The position numbers were made by a program, and so were the translations under genes. From sequence record LC819008.1: a stretch of 64,000 nucleotides of DNA, one strand, 5' to 3'. This document shows, piece after piece, positions 7,018 through 14,151 of this stretch. Under the pieces are notes generated by a model. That model made no database searches. It had not been told where the DNA came from and saw only the letters and a program-made list of their open reading frames with translations. How positions within the stretch are numbered: the stretch's first letter is position 1; every line of letters begins with the position of its first letter.

Positions 7018-8034
7018 TTAGAACACCAGGCCGTTGGATGCACGTTTCTTCGTGCCATCCGACAGCTTGTTCTTCACGACGCGAGCAGCTTCACGCTGTT
7101 CGTAATCGGCGACTTGCTTGCGAAGGCCCTTGACGACCGTGTCGAGGAAACCATCAGCCACCGCGAAATGCAGCGGGAAGCTGAGTGCACGCTTGTCGAC
7201 CGGCAAAGCTGCTTCATGCTCGACGATATGAACCGGTACGCCGACACGTTGGTATTCGACCGGCTGGCCGACTTTCGTGTTGTTCAGGTCCGTGTTCAGC
7301 GTTGCGACCGAGATCAGGTTGACGTCGCCGATCACCATCTTTTCCTGGTGGATCGACAGCACGCCGACTTGCGGTGCGTACGTGGTGACTTCGTCGAAGT
7401 GCAGCCAGTTGTGCAAATCGCGTTGGTCCAGGTTCTTGTTCTGGCCGCTGTAGAGCGCGGTCAGGCACGAGATTGCCAGATGAACCTTCGCGTCGATCTC
7501 TTCGATCGTGCCGTCGACACCGTTTTGCAGGAATTGCAGAACGATCGGTTTCTCGCGTGCTTCGACGATGCCTTCGTACGATTCGAGAGTGCCGATGCAG
7601 TTCTCGATGTAGTTCTTGGTGTCGTCACCGCCGATTACGAATGCGATTACCGACTTGCCCTGGTTCAGCGCTTCCGAAACGATCGACGGACCCATCACCG
7701 AACCCGAGCCGCCGGTAGCGGAATGGATCACGATGTTGATGTCGCCCAGCGGGAAACGTTGCAGCATTTCGCCGGTGTACTTGACGATGTCTGCGCCGTT
7801 GTGGCTACGCTTACCGCCCGAGCCGTTGGCTTCCGGCAGCTGATAGAAGAACTCTTCGGGCACGCCGAAGGTAGATGCTTTGGAGGTGTCCATGTACACC
7901 GGATTGACTTCTGCGTAACCGGCATTCTTCTTGCCGCGTTCGAGTTCGAAGTACTTGCCGATACCGATGCCTGCACCGCCCGTGCAGAAAATGTTGATTT
8001 TGCCCAGCGTGTTGGTATTGTTCAGATCCGACAT
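7018..8034 (-). CDS. phuZ: Phage tubulin PhuZ (spindle GTPase)
   Basis: Tubulin/FtsZ motifs 'FCTGGAGIGIG' and 'GSGGKRS', signature 'HSATGGSGSVMGP', T7 loop 'LDQRD', and a C-terminal tail ending 'GLVF' like PhuZ. 338 aa. Confidence 0.93.
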   Translation of the reverse strand: MSDLNNTNTLGKINIFCTGGAGIGIGKYFELERGKKNAGYAEVNPVYMDTSKASTFGVPEEFFYQLPEANGSGGKRSHNGADIVKYTGEMLQRFPLGDINIVIHSATGGSGSVMGPSIVSEALNQGKSVIAFVIGGDDTKNYIENCIGTLESYEGIVEAREKPIVLQFLQNGVDGTIEEIDAKVHLAISCLTALYSGQNKNLDQRDLHNWLHFDEVTTYAPQVGVLSIHQEKMVIGDVNLISVATLNTDLNNTKVGQPVEYQRVGVPVHIVEHEAALPVDKRALSFPLHFAVADGFLDTVVKGLRKQVADYEQREAARVVKNKLSDGTKKRASNGLVF

Positions 8035-8104: not shown

Positions 8105-8119
8105 GTAATATATCGCTGA
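8105..8119 (-). promoter_or_regulatory. Early-promoter-like motif upstream of phuZ
   Basis: Minus strand TCAGCGATATATTAC contains TATATTAC, the reported phiKZ early promoter core. It lies about 70 nt upstream of the start. Confidence 0.65.
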
Positions 8120-8143: not shown

Positions 8144-8956
8144 ATGCATTCAGGATCGGCCGTTGAGAAGGCCATCACGGAGATCAAGTACATCATCCCT
8201 GAGGAGATTCTTGATCTCGTCTTTCTCAAGAAAGCTTACTTCTTTCGTGACAGGCCGACCAACCTGGATCGAGAAATAATCAAGAAGGTCATCGCACCAC
8301 GCGTGATGGTCGACTGCAGTCTCATCGGAGGTACAGACTATATCGTACCCCTGATGGATATTTATCGCGAGCTTACCGAGGAGTGGATGGCTGTTTACCG
8401 CATCCCGAAAGAGTTCACCGATAACCGCAGCGTCATGTCGATTCTCGGCGTGATGTACATTAACCCGTACATGGTCTCGGCTCCTGCGGGCAACAACATT
8501 ACTGGCTGGTCGCACATCATGGCGACTACTCAGGCAGTGTTGGAAGCGATGTCTCCGATTCCGAACTTCAGTTCATCGGACGTTTCGCTTGAAGGTGAGA
8601 ACGTGATTGTCATTCGTGATGCTCGTGTTCTGCCCTCGTTCAGTTATGCTCGTGTCATTCTGTCTTACGACGAGTACATGAGCAACATCAATCCGCGTTC
8701 GTATCTCGCGTTTGCCAAGATGTGTGAACTCGCAGTCAAGTCATACATCTGGAAGAACCGCGTGATTCCTCTGGATCGTGGTGAACTGACTGCTGGCGTG
8801 ACGCTTGGCGCCATCAAGGAAGTCATCGACGAGTACAAGGATGCGGAACAGATGTATCAGGATTATCGCAAAGACACCATGCGAAAAGTCCTGTTGATGA
8901 ACGACGAAGGACGCAAACGTCGTCATCTCACGCGCATTATTGGCGGCTATAAATAA
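8144..8956 (+). CDS. Conserved phiKZ-like hypothetical protein
   Basis: 270-aa ORF divergent from phuZ, with an AAGGA RBS, followed by a hairpin. Confidence 0.7.
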   Translation: MHSGSAVEKAITEIKYIIPEEILDLVFLKKAYFFRDRPTNLDREIIKKVIAPRVMVDCSLIGGTDYIVPLMDIYRELTEEWMAVYRIPKEFTDNRSVMSILGVMYINPYMVSAPAGNNITGWSHIMATTQAVLEAMSPIPNFSSSDVSLEGENVIVIRDARVLPSFSYARVILSYDEYMSNINPRSYLAFAKMCELAVKSYIWKNRVIPLDRGELTAGVTLGAIKEVIDEYKDAEQMYQDYRKDTMRKVLLMNDEGRKRRHLTRIIGGYK

Positions 8957-8964
8957 TGTGGACT

Positions 8965-8992
8965 CCTACTCTACCCGAAAGGGTAGAGTAGG
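8965..8992 (+). terminator. Hairpin between convergent genes
   Basis: 12-bp perfect stem cctactctaccc/gggtagagtagg with a GAAA loop. Confidence 0.7.
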
Positions 8993-8998
8993 TAGACC

Positions 8999-9484
8999 TT
9001 ATGCTGTCGGATAGGAATCCGGGTAATCGTGATGCTTGAAGCCGTTGAGTCTGTCTTCGGCCTTGGCATCTTTGTATTTGTCGTTATTGATCACGACCGT
9101 CACGTGAGTATCGTCAAGCCAACCTTCGCGACTGACTTCGGAAATGTTTTTCAACATTTCGTCACTGCCGGCGGGAAGCTCACCTGCGATATGTTTGTTC
9201 TGGACATCTTGCCAGATAACGTGGTTGTAGCCCAAAAAGAAAATAGCCCACATCGCCGCAAGACATAACCACGCTCCAGCATCACGAGGCATGTGATACA
9301 GGAAGAATGCTGCGGAAACGACGAACAGCCAGAACGTCATCATGATCGCAAAGACCCAGTAACCGACCGCCTGCTGAGACCAGTTGAAGAGGATCGAATC
9401 CTCCTGATACATCAGCTGGTTCACCATCATGAAAAACGTGAACGCGAATAACAGCCAAAACAGAACACCCACAGCGGTATACAT
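8999..9484 (-). CDS. Multi-pass membrane protein (about 3 TM segments)
   Basis: Hydrophobic stretches 'VGVLFWLLFAFTFFMMV', 'YWVFAIMMTFWLFVVSAAFFLY' and 'AWLCLAAMWAIFFLGY'; GTGAGG RBS. Confidence 0.65.
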   Translation of the reverse strand: MYTAVGVLFWLLFAFTFFMMVNQLMYQEDSILFNWSQQAVGYWVFAIMMTFWLFVVSAAFFLYHMPRDAGAWLCLAAMWAIFFLGYNHVIWQDVQNKHIAGELPAGSDEMLKNISEVSREGWLDDTHVTVVINNDKYKDAKAEDRLNGFKHHDYPDSYPTA

Positions 9485-9587
9485 GGCCTACCTCACTTGT
9501 TATTAAAAAACGACCAAAAAAAATCCCAGGATAAGCTCTGGGATTGAAAAGCCCATCTCGGGGAGACCGGATGGGCTGGGCTACTGT

Positions 9588-9872
9588 TTAAACCGCTTCG
9601 AGCTTGAGGCTGTTACGCAGCACCACACCATTCATGGCACGTTCGATAGCTGCTTCAGCTTTCTTTGCTGCGAGGTCGGCTTCGCGCATTGCCATGCGTT
9701 GTGCATGGACATATTCTCGCACTTGCTTTTCTTCGCGAACCGTGAGGTTCTGACGTTCGAGGCGGTTGTTGACTTCGTCCCACTCGACTTCTTCAAACTT
9801 CTTGCCGTCCATGTACTTGTCCGACAGGAAGAGGCAGAATTCGAGAACGGTGACTTGATAGAGGTTATTCAT
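9588..9872 (-). CDS. Hypothetical helical protein
   Basis: 94 aa with an AGGAG RBS and an Ala/Glu/Lys-rich C-terminus. Confidence 0.6.
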   Translation of the reverse strand: MNNLYQVTVLEFCLFLSDKYMDGKKFEEVEWDEVNNRLERQNLTVREEKQVREYVHAQRMAMREADLAAKKAEAAIERAMNGVVLRNSLKLEAV

Positions 9873-9918
9873 GATGATGCTCCTGAGAGTTTGGAAATTA
9901 CACAGACGGTAGAGGAAG

Positions 9919-10065
9919 TTACTTGGCCAGCTTGTCGGTCATGTACGCGACCAAGGGGACGACGACGAGCAGGAGAAAGCCGACGTAGAGAACTACGTCT
10001 TTCCGTTTTGCTTTGACCGTATCGTTGCTGCGGTTTGCTGCTGCGAGAAATTGTTGCTTAGTCAT
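9919..10065 (-). CDS. Small single-pass membrane protein (48 aa, missing from the ORF track)
   Basis: Hand translation: MTKQQFLAAANRSNDTVKAKRKDVVLYVGFLLLVVVPLVAYMTDKLAK. It has an AGGA RBS and fills the operon gap. Confidence 0.6.
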   Translation of the reverse strand: MTKQQFLAAANRSNDTVKAKRKDVVLYVGFLLLVVVPLVAYMTDKLAK

Positions 10066-10109
10066 GACTTATTCCTGTTGTTTGACTGTACTGAATTTTG
10101 GTTAATCGA

Positions 10110-10571
10110 TTACTGCAGGGGAACACGCTTGCGGAAGGTATCGAACTGGATAACGACGTATCCGTTTTCGATTGTGACGCTCTCTACCCTCGCATTGCAG
10201 GTTCCGAAATCTTTGGCTTGGCGAACATCGCCATTTGCCAGGAACCAGTAAAGCTGATAGTCCGTCTTGCACTCGAACCCTTGGTTGCCTGAGATCAGGA
10301 TCAGGGGCTGATTGCTGTACGTACCATGCCAGGCGACTTTGATGTCGTCGAAGTTCTCTTCCATGTCAGTGACATAGTCGCGATACTTCATGTACCAGGT
10401 ACGAGCATCCGTATCCTGGTAGAACTGCACCGTGTCCACCGTTTTGCGGAGAACCGGTTTTGCATCCGCGTCACCTATACCACCCAACACCAGAACTGCG
10501 ATCGCTCCAACGATCGCAAGGATCCAGAACTTCCAGTTATCGTTGACATAGTTGCGAACTACTTGTGCCAT
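10110..10571 (-). CDS. Membrane-anchored or exported hypothetical protein
   Basis: N-terminal hydrophobic segment 'WKFWILAIVGAIAVLVLGGIG' followed by a beta-rich domain with 2 Cys; GGAG RBS. Confidence 0.65.
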   Translation of the reverse strand: MAQVVRNYVNDNWKFWILAIVGAIAVLVLGGIGDADAKPVLRKTVDTVQFYQDTDARTWYMKYRDYVTDMEENFDDIKVAWHGTYSNQPLILISGNQGFECKTDYQLYWFLANGDVRQAKDFGTCNARVESVTIENGYVVIQFDTFRKRVPLQ

Positions 10572-10603
10572 TGCGTCATCTCCAGTTACTGCATTGTAAA
10601 AAG

Positions 10604-10789
10604 TTACCTGTGGCGGATATTCGTCATCAGGCGTTGGACTTCATTCCGAACCACCATCTCGAAGGTATTCGGAAGTTCGCGGAATTCGACATCGATGATG
10701 TCAGGCTCGGTGATGACCTTGGGTACTGCAGGTTGAATCGAATTGTACATCTTCAAAGCTTGTGAAACGTATTGCTGACTGTGTGCCAT
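10604..10789 (-). CDS. Small hypothetical protein (61 aa)
   Basis: ATG at 10789 with a GGAGG RBS. Confidence 0.55.
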   Translation of the reverse strand: MAHSQQYVSQALKMYNSIQPAVPKVITEPDIIDVEFRELPNTFEMVVRNEVQRLMTNIRHR

Positions 10790-10840
10790 GATACGCCTCC
10801 GTTGAAAAGAATACAAAGTTCTTTATCCAACTTCACCGCA

Positions 10841-10855
10841 GTTATATGTTTCTGA
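10841..10855 (-). promoter_or_regulatory. Early-promoter-like motif
   Basis: Minus strand TCAGAAACATATAAC, identical to the copy at 13077-13091. Confidence 0.6.
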
Positions 10856-10919
10856 ATTATTCTGGGATTCGATATTTGACGGCATAAGCCGGGGATGGGT
10901 TTTACCCCATCCCCTAGCT

Positions 10920-12227
10920 TTACGCGACCAGTTTCAAACGTTTTGCATTCGAGCGACGGCAGAGCTCCGTCAGGAATGCATCCGGATCTTCCGGGTTTTC
11001 CTTGAATGCAAGTTCTACTTCACAACCAGGCAGCAACCATTCTTCCGAATGGCACGACAGAATAAACCGTCGTACTTCTTCGTTGGTGAGATCGTACATC
11101 AGTGCCATGTAAGGCTCGATCTCTTTGCTCGTGAGTTCGCCGATCAGGTAATCCTTATCGACTCGACCTGCGCGTTTGATAGCTTCATCGAGATCTTCCG
11201 GATGATTGGTCGTCATGATGACGATCAGGTTATCTAATCCGATTACTCCATCAAACGCATTGAGTACACCAGACATGGTAAGGAAGCTCAGGTCTGCAAC
11301 GGCCTCGACCAGTTCCTTTTTCTTTTTGCGGTCCTTCACTGCACTGCCTGATTGATCGACATCCTCAATGAGAACGATCGAACCAGGTTTGATGGTCGCC
11401 AATGCCTCCATGAGCGAACCATTTGAATGCTGAGACAGATCAAGCAAGTACAGATCTTTCTTGAAACGAGCAGAAAGCAGCTTCGACAGTGTCGTCTTAC
11501 CAGTACCCGGGGGTCCGTAAAAGAGGAACGAAATTTTGTATGTCAGTCCTTTTTTACGATACCACTCTCGACGATTTGAGAATTCTTCAATCCTTCCCAA
11601 GATGTCGGCCTTCAGGTCTGCGTTCATGCAAAACGTTTCGATGTCTCGCATGGGGACTTTACCTACCTGCTCCCAGCTTTTATCGCCACCGTACTTGTGG
11701 ATGAACACTTCGTCGGAAGCACCACGCTTTTCATTGAAGAGATCGACCAGTTGCAGGAATGAACTTTGATTCCATCCAAACGTGCGGATGGTGATTTCTT
11801 CTTTTTGTTTTTCAGACCCGCCAGATTCCAGAGAACCTTTATCGAACCAGAAGAACTTTCGTTTGTACCAGAAAACATGAACGCCCTTGCCGATACCCAA
11901 GCGGTAAGGCTTGAATACGGTTTCATCCGAAAACATGTCTTCCTTGTATTGCCGGAACATGAAGAAGCTACGACTGAATTTCGCGTAGCCGGACATCATG
12001 AACCATTTGTCAAACATGTTGTACGCATCTGCATTGCCGTCCCAACCAGCATTGTTCAGACGCATCGTAACCGTCGTGTAGCGAACGACCAGATCCCAGA
12101 ACTTCTTGGGCAGGTCTTTCAAGTAAAACATGATACCGCCAACCAACGGCAGTACCAGCGTCGCTAAGAGAGGGTTAGCTTTCGTTGCTGCATCGTAGTG
12201 GCCAAAGAGCCCATAGATCCAGTCCAT
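10920..12227 (-). CDS. BCS1-like membrane-anchored AAA+ ATPase
   Basis: N-terminal TM 'PLLATLVLPLVGGIMFYL' and a BCS1_N-like domain ('GKGVHVFWYKRKFFWFDK...EEITIRTFG'). Walker A GPPGTGKTT, Walker B VLIEDVD, 'TMSGVLNAFDGV', and SRH 'IMTTNHPEDLDEAIKRAGRVD'. Start at ATG 12227 (GGGGA RBS). Confidence 0.85.
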   Translation of the reverse strand: MDWIYGLFGHYDAATKANPLLATLVLPLVGGIMFYLKDLPKKFWDLVVRYTTVTMRLNNAGWDGNADAYNMFDKWFMMSGYAKFSRSFFMFRQYKEDMFSDETVFKPYRLGIGKGVHVFWYKRKFFWFDKGSLESGGSEKQKEEITIRTFGWNQSSFLQLVDLFNEKRGASDEVFIHKYGGDKSWEQVGKVPMRDIETFCMNADLKADILGRIEEFSNRREWYRKKGLTYKISFLFYGPPGTGKTTLSKLLSARFKKDLYLLDLSQHSNGSLMEALATIKPGSIVLIEDVDQSGSAVKDRKKKKELVEAVADLSFLTMSGVLNAFDGVIGLDNLIVIMTTNHPEDLDEAIKRAGRVDKDYLIGELTSKEIEPYMALMYDLTNEEVRRFILSCHSEEWLLPGCEVELAFKENPEDPDAFLTELCRRSNAKRLKLVA

Positions 12228-12306
12228 GTTGTTATTCCCCGAAAGAGTATTGTCAAAATAAACGTTGGCCAAATAAAAAAAGATTCAAACCTAGGCCGAC
12301 AGAGAT

Positions 12307-12334
12307 CCTAGTACCTCCGTGAGGAGGTACTAGG
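12307..12334. terminator. Intergenic hairpin
   Basis: 12-bp perfect stem cctagtacctcc/ggaggtactagg with loop GTGA. Confidence 0.55.
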
Positions 12335-12344
12335 TCACCGCTTC

Positions 12345-13019
12345 TTATTTAATTTTCGAAAGATCGAGATAGAACATCATCTCGTTATCGGTCTTCGGAA
12401 AGAATGCCTTGATCTTCCCGAGATAGTCTTTCTTGTCGCTGCCGATTACCCTGGAGTAGAAACCTACTTCCAGAAGAACACCACTGAACGGTTCTTCCTC
12501 GATGTTCACAAGATTCTTGCGATCCATCTTCATCCGGTAAACCATTGGGTGGAGTTTCTCCAGAACGATAACGTTCTCTTCCAGGTTGTTCTTGACGATC
12601 AAGGGCAGACTGATCTTGCCACCATGCAGCTGGTGTCCATTGGCATACCCCATGCCAAGGCAGATCTGGTTGTTTGCCGTGTTGTAGCCGAACTCAGCAA
12701 TGATCTCACGATCATCCTGAATGAAACGACTCATCACATCCATACAACCACTCAGATCACGGCGAAGCGTCTCCGAGAATTTCTTGATACCGACATCGTA
12801 CGGCTTTTTCTCGACTACACGCTTCTCCCCAGGAATCGGGGTGTAATCGATACCAGGCTCTACAGCAGGCTTCATGACACTGGTAGGGGGTAGGCTTGGA
12901 CGTGCCGTCACGAGCGGGCTGGTGAGCCCTCCAGTGACTGTGAGCACCATTCCCTCATCGTCATCACGATCCCCGGCTTGCGCCATTCTGAAATCCGCAT
13001 AGCGGTTGGTCTTCTTCAC
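12345..13019 (-). CDS. Hypothetical protein
   Basis: 224 aa, GTG start with an AAGGAG RBS. Confidence 0.65.
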   Translation of the reverse strand: MKKTNRYADFRMAQAGDRDDDEGMVLTVTGGLTSPLVTARPSLPPTSVMKPAVEPGIDYTPIPGEKRVVEKKPYDVGIKKFSETLRRDLSGCMDVMSRFIQDDREIIAEFGYNTANNQICLGMGYANGHQLHGGKISLPLIVKNNLEENVIVLEKLHPMVYRMKMDRKNLVNIEEEPFSGVLLEVGFYSRVIGSDKKDYLGKIKAFFPKTDNEMMFYLDLSKIK

Positions 13020-13076
13020 GGATGTAACTCCTTGTGGTACAACATTTTAAAAGGTTTACAGCGGAAACTCACAATC

Positions 13077-13091
13077 GTTATATGTTTCTGA
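13077..13091 (-). promoter_or_regulatory. Early-promoter-like motif
   Basis: Minus strand TCAGAAACATATAAC, 58 nt upstream of the 13019 start. Confidence 0.6.
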
Positions 13092-13503
13092 AACAATCTA
13101 GAGTTCCAACCTTTCAAAGAATCAAAGAGCATAGCTTTGAAAGACCGAAACGCCCTTTCGGACGTCTCGGTTCTCTCTGGGGGGATGAATGTGGTTGTGT
13201 ATCCCTCCAGATCATGGAGGGATCATAGTTTCTTTTTATACGCCTTCCACAGGCGTATCACTTTTTTCTTTTCTTTCTTTCAAAAACTTTAGACTTATTA
13301 TTCTTATTATTGTAAATACGTTAGTATTTACAATACTAACGTTTATAACTAATTCTAAAATTCTCTCTACAAGGTTCTGGTCACATTTAGAAAAATATAT
13401 GTTTATGCCTGTTAAGGCAGCAAAACTGTCCGGTAAAAATTCGGCAAGAAGCACAGATCATCTGACATCCGTTCCACTATCAAACGCAAAGGACGAAACG
13501 AAC

Positions 13504-14151
13504 ATGGGCCTCGTAGGCACTCTGCGCGAGATCGAAAAAACCTCGCCCGAAGAACTCAACCGCTATTCCGAAAACCGTCCCGTCATGGTCGACGGTTCCC
13601 TGTCCGAACTCGTGACTCAGGCACTGAATGTCGCCTACACGAAAAAAGACATGACATCGGGTAAACCGTACTACGGTCATCAAAACGCAACGGGCGAACC
13701 GCCTCCTGGCGCAGGCAACATTCCCGACATCCTGAACCCGGATACTCCGCGTCAGGATCCGAACATCGTCAAGCCTTCGCTTGAAGGCATGCAGCAAATG
13801 GGCGCAGATGCAATTGCGACGGCAGCTGCTGTGCTCGAAGAAGCCGTCAACGTGAACGACGGCCACGAACACCGCGTGGGTGAAGATCCGCTCATGGTTT
13901 ACGCCATTCCGGAAGACGGTAAGGTCACGGAAGAAATGAACGCGAACATCGACATGTACGGCGACTCCGGTGCCATGGATCCGTCGAACTTCGTGTTTGT
14001 TTTCACCGACAAGAACGATACTGTTGGAAGCATCGACTATCGTTGCGTCGATCTGAGCCAGAAAGTGAAGGACTACGAGAGCAAGGGCGCCAAGGTGTAC
14101 CAGTCGCTCGAATCGTTCTTCCGCGACTACGACAACCTGCGTAAGAAGTAA
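13504..14151 (+). CDS. phiKZ-like putative virion (head) protein
   Basis: ATG 13504 with an AAGGA RBS. The longer ORF start (13189) runs through AT-rich non-coding-like DNA. Contains 'DGSLSELVTQALNVAY' and 'PSLEG', a possible S/A/G-X-E head-protease site. Confidence 0.6.
   Translation: MGLVGTLREIEKTSPEELNRYSENRPVMVDGSLSELVTQALNVAYTKKDMTSGKPYYGHQNATGEPPPGAGNIPDILNPDTPRQDPNIVKPSLEGMQQMGADAIATAAAVLEEAVNVNDGHEHRVGEDPLMVYAIPEDGKVTEEMNANIDMYGDSGAMDPSNFVFVFTDKNDTVGSIDYRCVDLSQKVKDYESKGAKVYQSLESFFRDYDNLRKK

Follow-up and report, generated by a model that had tools for sequence, protein, structure and literature searches.

Mitochondrial Bcs1, an AAA+ heptamer, translocates the Rieske Fe-S protein in its folded form. 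To our knowledge, no other AAA+ machine carries a protein through a membrane while leaving it folded. In bacteria, the export of folded proteins is normally the task of the twin-arginine translocation (Tat) pathway, and we know of no Bcs1-like copy in a phage that has been characterised. Iyer et al. 2021 described BCS1 orthologues from each of the three major groups of jumbo phages and proposed a role in membrane-proximal assembly (PMC7824862). Here we describe gp18, a Bcs1-family AAA+ ATPase of Ralstonia phage FLC4-4C (LC819008.1), together with its neighbouring genes. FLC4-4C is an RSL2-like nucleus-forming jumbo phage with a genome of 225 kb, and Ralstonia is a plant pathogen. The window that we analysed is the first 64 kb (64,000 nucleotides) of this genome, and the block under study, bases 8999-13091, matches the GenBank record at 100% identity with coordinates unchanged. 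FLC4-4C gp18 is a further member of the already reported gene type, and the idea that such a protein takes part in export or remodelling has been published in outline (PMC7824862).

The gp18 gene lies on the minus strand at 10920-12227 and encodes 435 residues from its ATG, or 450 residues with an upstream TTG at 12272. The Bcs1-specific BCS1_N domain (PF08740; 11634-12143, minus strand) is matched over profile positions 1-181 of 182, with an E value of 2e-12 and 47.9 bits (cutoff 28.1), and nearly all gp18 homologues carry a precomputed BCS1_N domain. The AAA module (PF00004; 11142-11525, minus strand) is matched with an E value of 4.6e-16, above the curated cutoff, and contains the Walker A motif GPPGTGKT, the ED of Walker B, a sensor-1 Asn, and two Arg residues in the sequence KRAGRVD. 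In an alignment of 27 homologues, columns G238-T245, E288, D289, N341, R352, and R355 are invariant. When Protein Data Bank (PDB) sequences were searched by phmmer, yeast and mouse Bcs1 were the top matches of gp18 (E values 8e-30 and 5e-24); Cdc48 and p97 ranked below them.

Structural comparison gave the same answer. An AlphaFold monomer model of gp18 was built from the 27-homologue alignment (predicted local distance difference test score, pLDDT, 80.8), and its 12 best Foldseek matches in the PDB are full-length Bcs1 chains, with E values of 1e-27 to 3e-23, alignments of about 365-438 columns, and TM-scores of 0.46-0.58 by query. These are followed by the AAA domain of Bcs1 alone (root-mean-square deviation 2.7-2.9 Å), and then by YjoB of Bacillus subtilis. 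Together, the Pfam, phmmer, and Foldseek results and the invariant catalytic residues argue that gp18 is a genuine full-length Bcs1-family AAA+ ATPase, and we consider this assignment well supported by sequence and predicted fold. An original prediction, made without database searches, had called the protein a BCS1-type ATPase with KRAGRVD in its AAA module. This is borne out by the two Pfam domains above their cutoffs, by Bcs1 as the best PDB match in both sequence and fold, and by the presence of KRAGRVD itself.

Compared with mitochondrial Bcs1 (yeast Bcs1, mouse and human BCS1L), gp18 has the same order of N-terminal helix, Bcs1-specific domain, and AAA module, and likewise keeps intact Walker A, Walker B, and Arg residues. 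It likewise lacks a canonical aromatic pore loop: the phmmer alignment pairs the stretch from Walker A to Walker B with its yeast Bcs1 counterpart, and by inspection neither contains an aromatic-hydrophobic-Gly pore loop. The predicted side of the gp18 ATPase, the cytoplasm, matches the matrix side of Bcs1. On the other hand, gp18 is only 21-24% identical to mitochondrial Bcs1 over the full-length chains and 27% over the AAA domain alone, the hydrophobicity of its N-terminal helix is low, a mitochondrial targeting context is absent, and no gene for a Rieske-type client lies nearby. YjoB (PDB 7w42), a soluble bacterial chaperone-like AAA+ protein with a Bcs1-like N-terminal domain, is the next-best full-length fold match after Bcs1 (E value 1e-16) and is also a PDB sequence match for gp18, clearly weaker than the Bcs1 matches. 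With FtsH, gp18 shares a classical-clade AAA module and an N-terminal hydrophobic segment, but gp18 has neither the M41 protease domain nor the second membrane helix, and its chain ends after the AAA lid. Pfam gave no Peptidase_M41 match in gp18, finding BCS1_N and AAA only. We note that the FtsH label on the RsoM3USA orthologue in GenBank is a mis-annotation.

The candidate membrane anchor of gp18 is an N-terminal hydrophobic helix of residues 18-36 (12120-12176, minus strand), and its position is kept in 13 orthologues. The helix passes a Kyte-Doolittle threshold with a value of 1.72 and contains two Pro and two Gly residues; an approximate Hessa scale, used for all the helix energies given here, puts it at about +4.4 kcal/mol. 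Its flanks carry a net charge of -1 before and +2 after the helix, following the positive-inside rule, and we predict from the sequence that the N-terminus of gp18 is outside and the C-terminal ATPase is cytoplasmic. The membrane segment named in the original prediction is thus supported as to its conserved position, and its hydrophobicity is marginal.

A tblastn search with gp18 found the family in 168 phage records. Members include phiKZ (gp286), PhiPA3 (gp347), Noxifer, and Psa21, as well as jumbo phages of Erwinia, Serratia, and Klebsiella. The family is also present in quite different phage groups, including Caulobacter CcrColossus, Brevundimonas phages, Shewanella KASIA (91 kb), and Salmonella Munch and PHA46. 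Intermediate relatives are found on three metagenomic contigs (L014, L015, and L016), with ATPases 58%, 52%, and 43% identical to gp18, respectively. gp18 and phiKZ gp286 both belong to PHROG 7485 and are 32% identical over 86% of the query in tblastn; by these sequence comparisons, gp18 is the FLC4-4C orthologue of phiKZ gp286. It aligns over its full length with phiKZ gp286 (L005:5887-7413) and with PhiPA3 gp347 (L012:4893-6419), which is in the same PHROG, and the N-terminal helix is in the same position. These two proteins have 508 residues compared with the 435 of gp18, and contain an extra ~70-80 residues inside the AAA region, so that the alignment to gp18 is in two pieces. Their loci have another conserved neighbour (gp285 in phiKZ, gp346 in PhiPA3) and, unlike the gp18 locus, no membrane-protein neighbours.

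Published genetic data on phiKZ show that this gene is dispensable in the laboratory. In transposon sequencing of phiKZ, PHIKZ286 had 20 insertion sites with 20,517 reads, whereas essential genes had zero (bioRxiv 10.1101/2025.11.23.690004, supplementary table 2). Antisense knockdown of gp286 left plaque counts unaffected and lowered ChmA, and the gene was classed as non-core (PMC12571901). Given this dispensability and the prior report of BCS1 orthologues, the gene type is known and laboratory-dispensable. The locus therefore adds a well-documented member and its regulatory context, and not a new kind of system. The original prediction had also suggested a link to the early infection vesicle, which finds no support in the dispensability of the phiKZ orthologue or in the presence of the family in quite different phage groups.

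Taking these results together with those on the neighbouring genes below, we favour a combined reading, which we regard as about evenly poised between right and wrong. In this reading, gp18, as the gp286 orthologue, forms a membrane-held ring that remodels or moves a folded client in an accessory role, and gp17-gp13 are a separate unit. gp18 would assemble into a ring, heptameric by analogy with Bcs1. The marginal N-terminal helices would anchor this ring to the inner membrane on its cytoplasmic side, with the N-termini outside and the ATPase domains in the cytoplasm. ATP would drive the remodelling of a folded client, or its movement into or across the membrane, and not the threading of an unfolded chain. 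The gene would be accessory, not core. We infer both the ring size and the translocase activity of gp18 by analogy with Bcs1.

Several observations weigh against this combined reading. The N-terminal helix is weak in most orthologues (roughly +0.6 to +4.7 kcal/mol on the approximate scale), and one orthologue, that of L016, has a negative value. The literature searched holds no experiment on the membrane location, ring size, or substrate of phage Bcs1-like proteins. Small membrane or exported proteins recur near the ATPase (Phobos gp120, PHA46 gp123, and loci L014-L018), and therefore a loose functional link to membrane proteins may exist; by a rough estimate, such proteins are no commoner near the ATPase than expected from their general abundance in phage early regions. 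Finally, phiKZ gp286 was recovered from cleared lysates; it and gp285 were found with 70S ribosomes on fractionation and were cross-linked to the L7/L12-stalk proteins RplL, RplK, and RplJ (PMC10449902). A soluble or ribosome-linked role explains these data no less well than a membrane role does.

A ribosome-linked role, as read from the phiKZ proteomics, is a serious rival. The protein would then remodel host ribosomes or nascent phage proteins and so aid early phage protein synthesis, and the helix would serve only oligomerisation or peripheral attachment. The 70S co-fractionation and the cross-links speak for such a role, and the lowering of ChmA protein in the knockdown, with plaque counts not reduced, is consistent with it, as is a soluble relative, YjoB, being the next-best fold match after Bcs1. 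phiKZ gp286 was also found in high-molecular-weight sedimentation fractions of lysates that contained Triton and combined the 10-, 20-, and 30-min time points of infection (PMC10914614). This sedimentation is compatible with a ring and not specific to a ring, and a ring of about 0.4-0.8 MDa would in any case co-elute with large complexes. In our judgement the cross-links are weak evidence, since L7/L12 is abundant and flexible. Moreover, no homologue of phiKZ gp285 adjoins gp18 in FLC4-4C, and the position of the hydrophobic helix is kept in all orthologues examined. We consider the ribosome-linked role unlikely.

The next alternative is the one put forward by the original prediction, in which gp18, gp19, and gp17-gp13 would form one membrane export or remodelling system, with the small membrane proteins as clients or co-factors, acting at the early vesicle or the inner membrane. 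The genes, boxes, and hairpin listed in that prediction are all present where it placed them, and the open reading frame (ORF) list and the GenBank annotation agree on the gene order gp19, gp18, gp17, gp16, gp15, gp14, and gp13 on the minus strand. A 48-residue membrane peptide that it took to be unannotated is annotated as gp15 in the public record.

The neighbours are a mixture of soluble and membrane proteins, all encoded on the minus strand. gp19 (224 residues, 12345-13019), directly upstream of gp18, has a disordered N-terminal part of ~70 residues and a confidently modelled, beta-rich C-terminal domain in the AlphaFold model. Downstream of gp18, gp17 (61 residues, 10604-10789) is soluble and confined to the RSL2-like clade (PHROG 35615). 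gp16 (153 residues, 10110-10571) has an N-terminal signal-anchor helix and a C-terminal domain with two Cys residues, which, judged from the sequence, probably faces the periplasm. gp15 (48 residues, 9919-10065) has a basic N-terminus and a C-terminal membrane helix resembling a tail anchor. gp14 (94 residues, 9588-9872) is soluble and clade-specific (PHROG 31386), and gp13 (161 residues, 8999-9484) has two strong membrane helices, a weaker third one, and an acidic C-terminal tail, and is again confined to the RSL2-like clade. Hydropathy analysis found one strong N-terminal helix in gp16, one helix in gp15, and none in gp17, gp14, or gp19. The anchored 153-residue protein, the 48-residue membrane peptide, and the three-helix protein described previously are therefore real in this respect, with the third helix of gp13 weaker than the others.

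The conservation of this gene order depends on the distance of the relatives compared. The block is 97% identical in the sister phages FLC8, FLC6, FLC4-11C, and FLC4-5C, and 76-81% identical in RSL2, RsoM3USA, RSF1, and SURPRISE13. Genes gp13-gp19 are syntenic in RSL2, RSF1, and SURPRISE13, as a single system would predict, but the synteny there extends over the whole region from a gp21-like gene to the gene of the tubulin PhuZ (gp11, 7018-8034 in FLC4-4C). As everything around the block is also syntenic in these close relatives, the adjacency of gp13-gp19 carries little information.

In the three metagenomic contigs L014-L016, the ATPase gene still lies between a gp19 homologue directly upstream (25-32% identity) and the DUF7484 and PhuZ genes, and the genes between the ATPase and DUF7484/PhuZ have changed. 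A gp16-like protein is whole only in L014 (215 residues). We observed that the gp16 anchor alone is encoded by mini-ORFs of 30-33 residues in L015 (7071-7172) and L016 (7088-7180), which may be either decaying genes or functional mini-peptides. At the gp15 position, L014-L016 encode a peptide of 47-63 residues with a C-terminal membrane helix, and peptides of this architecture (44-63 residues) occur in L014-L017, with no detectable sequence homology to gp15. These partial similarities, in relatives whose ATPases are 43-58% identical to gp18, favour a single system, as does the predicted topology of gp16: its N-terminus in and Cys-containing folded domain out resemble the Rieske protein, the client of Bcs1. 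However, Sec or YidC normally takes care of signal-anchor proteins such as gp16.

In more distant relatives the neighbourhood disappears. No neighbour, gp19 included, is kept beside the ATPase gene in L017, L018, L019, or L020, and no homologue of the gp18 neighbours was found beside it in phiKZ, PhiPA3, PHA46, Phobos, or Noxifer. In three of these five cultured phages (phiKZ, PhiPA3, and Noxifer), none of the genes within three or four positions of the ATPase encodes a membrane protein. The occurrence of the family in quite different phage groups also counts against a single system. As a co-occurring module, then, the neighbours do not hold together: gp13-gp17 are found beside the ATPase gene only in the RSL2-like clade, and gp19 alone is kept in L014-L016. 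On these sequence comparisons, the adjacency of gp17-gp13 would reflect lineage synteny and not a fixed module, and gp19 is the only plausible candidate for a conserved partner of gp18.

Regulatory elements in the block also bear on whether it is one unit. The exact 16-mer TTCAGAAACATATAAC is found on the minus strand at 13077-13092, 58 nt upstream of the gp19 start, and again at 10841-10856 (minus strand), 52 nt upstream of gp17. These are its only two occurrences in the window and in the 225-kb genome, and no such box precedes gp18. The core of the box at 13077 is invariant in RSL2, RSF1, and SURPRISE13. The core of the other box, together with the gp17 leader (about 10814-10849), forms a ~35-nt run that is 100% identical in FLC4-4C, RSL2, RSF1, and SURPRISE13. 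This is above the conservation of coding sequence (surrounding DNA 76-81%), so the run may be a regulatory RNA or DNA element.

With two genomic copies, the 16-mer was rejected as a general motif, and just its 9-nt core generalises. The pattern AYATATWAC has 15 sites genome-wide, all on the minus strand, while the reversed control pattern gave 0 and 1; the sites within the window are at 8105, 10841, 13077, 30456, 51103, and 59528. Of the 15, 13 precede minus-strand genes at a distance of 28-176 nt, and these genes include those of chimallin (gp240), PhuZ (gp11), and DNA ligase (gp102). The extended motif reads TTTCA-N3-4-ATATATWAC-N4-GTGA, in which the upstream TTTCA is common to the sites and the downstream GTGA is often present. 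Early promoters in other jumbo phages are AT-rich motifs of ~10 nt near position -10 (PMC7598289), and phiKZ chmA belongs to the early genes and requires the virion RNA polymerase (PMC12571901). The strand bias, the placement before chimallin and PhuZ, and these published AT-rich promoters suggest that RSL2-like phages probably use AYATATWAC as their early promoter, with the extended motif as a candidate consensus for the virion RNA polymerase. The label of early-promoter-like boxes, given previously to the two identical copies, both members of this 15-site class, is a reasonable one. As a candidate promoter for chimallin, PhuZ, and about a dozen other genes, the motif is possibly the more useful by-product of this analysis in the short term.

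Two stable hairpins flank gp18 on the minus strand. The first, at 12300-12341 after the gp19 stop codon, has a folding energy of -28.5 kcal/mol (z = -4.0) and is followed ~25 nt later by a run of seven T; its stem is kept via compensatory changes in RSL2, RSF1, and SURPRISE13, and it is a possible attenuating terminator between gp19 and gp18. The second, at 10888-10916 directly after the gp18 stop codon, has a folding energy of -25.8 kcal/mol (z = -4.3) and no U-tract, and in SURPRISE13 both of its arms are altered with pairing kept. The hairpin that had been described as separating the ATPase from the downstream genes is therefore both stable and conserved in its pairing. A further terminator-like hairpin with a T-run lies in the gap between gp14 and gp13 (9522-9545, minus strand). 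A sigma-70 promoter scan of the block found fewer sites than in shuffled sequence. For gp18 itself, we suggest that transcription may read through from gp19 or start at a promoter that escaped recognition. In L016, a ATATATTAC box is found directly upstream of the ATPase gene, which hints that the ATPase family is expressed early.

We note that contigs of a 90-97% identical relative are present in three root metatranscriptomes and cover gp14, gp16, gp19, and the gp19-gp18 junction, although these may represent DNA carry-over. One of them bridges the 3' end of gp19 and the start of gp18; it gives no timing and may likewise be DNA carry-over. The body of gp18 is not covered by these contigs, and gp18, an unusually divergent allele, may fall below the 90% likeness cut.

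These elements point in both directions for a single system comprising gp18 and its neighbours. The flanking boxes are probably early promoters, which would fit it, but gp17-gp13 have their own box after a conserved hairpin, and they are probably a separate early transcription unit. Neighbours that are lineage-specific genes, a promoter box of their own behind the hairpin, and the inconsistent presence of membrane proteins near orthologues all argue against a dedicated export or remodelling system with neighbours as clients. We regard such a system as improbable, about as much so as the ribosome-linked role.

The gp18 allele itself shows mosaicism among close relatives. gp18 is 64% identical to gp17 of RSL2 (L006), although the flanking genes are 84-95% identical, and the ranking of relatives flips for RSF1, in which gp18 is 78% identical and the neighbours are 54-78% identical. 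This mosaic pattern suggests that the ATPase gene has been exchanged by recombination. A sliding-window comparison with RSL2, RSF1, and SURPRISE13 found gp18 divergent along its length, with a somewhat greater divergence in the C-terminal lid, and singled out no substrate-binding region.

Two further roles appear less probable still. Following the proposal of Iyer et al. 2021 (PMC7824862), gp18 might be a chaperone of virion assembly close to the membrane, taking up folded head or ejection proteins at the inner membrane and passing them to the assembling prohead. The presence of the family in several unrelated large-phage groups agrees with this proposal, but phiKZ gp286 tolerates insertions and knockdown, while structural and assembly genes had zero insertions in the same screen. 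In addition, gp18 lies among probable early genes and not in the structural module, and the box directly upstream of the L016 ATPase gene is of the early type. We consider an assembly chaperone very unlikely.

We give a similarly low standing to a machine for membrane-protein extraction or degradation, or for counter-defence, which would draw membrane proteins of the host or of competitors from the bilayer and in some relatives would resemble a split FtsH, paired with a small zinc protease encoded next to it. The gene directly after the ATPase gene in L014 (6481-7071), L015 (6440-7060), and L016 (6462-7073) encodes a protein of ~200 residues with an invariant AHELGH (HExxH) motif and Peptidase_M48 or M78-like matches, and the ATPase and this putative protease may be paired in these phages. 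Allele mosaicism, such as that of gp18, is often seen in host-interacting genes, and a conditional role would agree with dispensability in a single laboratory host. However, the zinc-protease-like gene gave no match when searched for in FLC4-4C and is absent from phiKZ-type loci, and Bcs1-type rings lack unfolding pore loops, both in the alignment of gp18 with Bcs1 and in published Bcs1 structures. PADLOC defence-system models gave only generic AAA matches for gp18 (IetA, TRIP13) and none for its neighbours.

It is also highly doubtful that the ring, perhaps with gp19 as an adaptor, is a Tat-independent exporter of folded proteins across the inner membrane that would insert or export phage proteins such as gp16. 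If true, folded-protein export by a phage Bcs1-like ring would be a new bacterial export route and a tractable model for Bcs1, and it would provide a virus-carried, bacterial-side counterpart of the mitochondrial Bcs1 pathway.

As for gp19, its model gave no Foldseek match below an E value of 0.1 other than orthologues, in the PDB and among viral structures, and the protein has no Pfam or PHROG assignment and only low scores in the protein atlas. The C-terminal fold of the model looks novel to the libraries searched. A distant homology of gp19 to phiKZ gp285, which occupies the same position upstream of the ATPase gene, was considered and rejected (BLASTP E value 1.3, no relation). For gp16, protein-language-model look-alikes are small periplasmic lipoprotein-like or inhibitor-like proteins (score 0.90), which we take as a lead only.

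The region between the divergent genes gp19 and gp20 (13020-13503) is unusually long for an intergenic region (484 nt) and has AT-rich stretches and hairpins at 13201-13223 and 13238-13258. The ORF finder called a 320-residue ORF in this region, whereas the annotated gene starts only at 13504. A relative ~98% identical over the whole block (region compared 8900-13300) was found in soil metagenomes (X1), and the root metatranscriptomes (X11, X14, and X16) and soil metagenomes together place RSL2-like relatives in natural soil and root samples.

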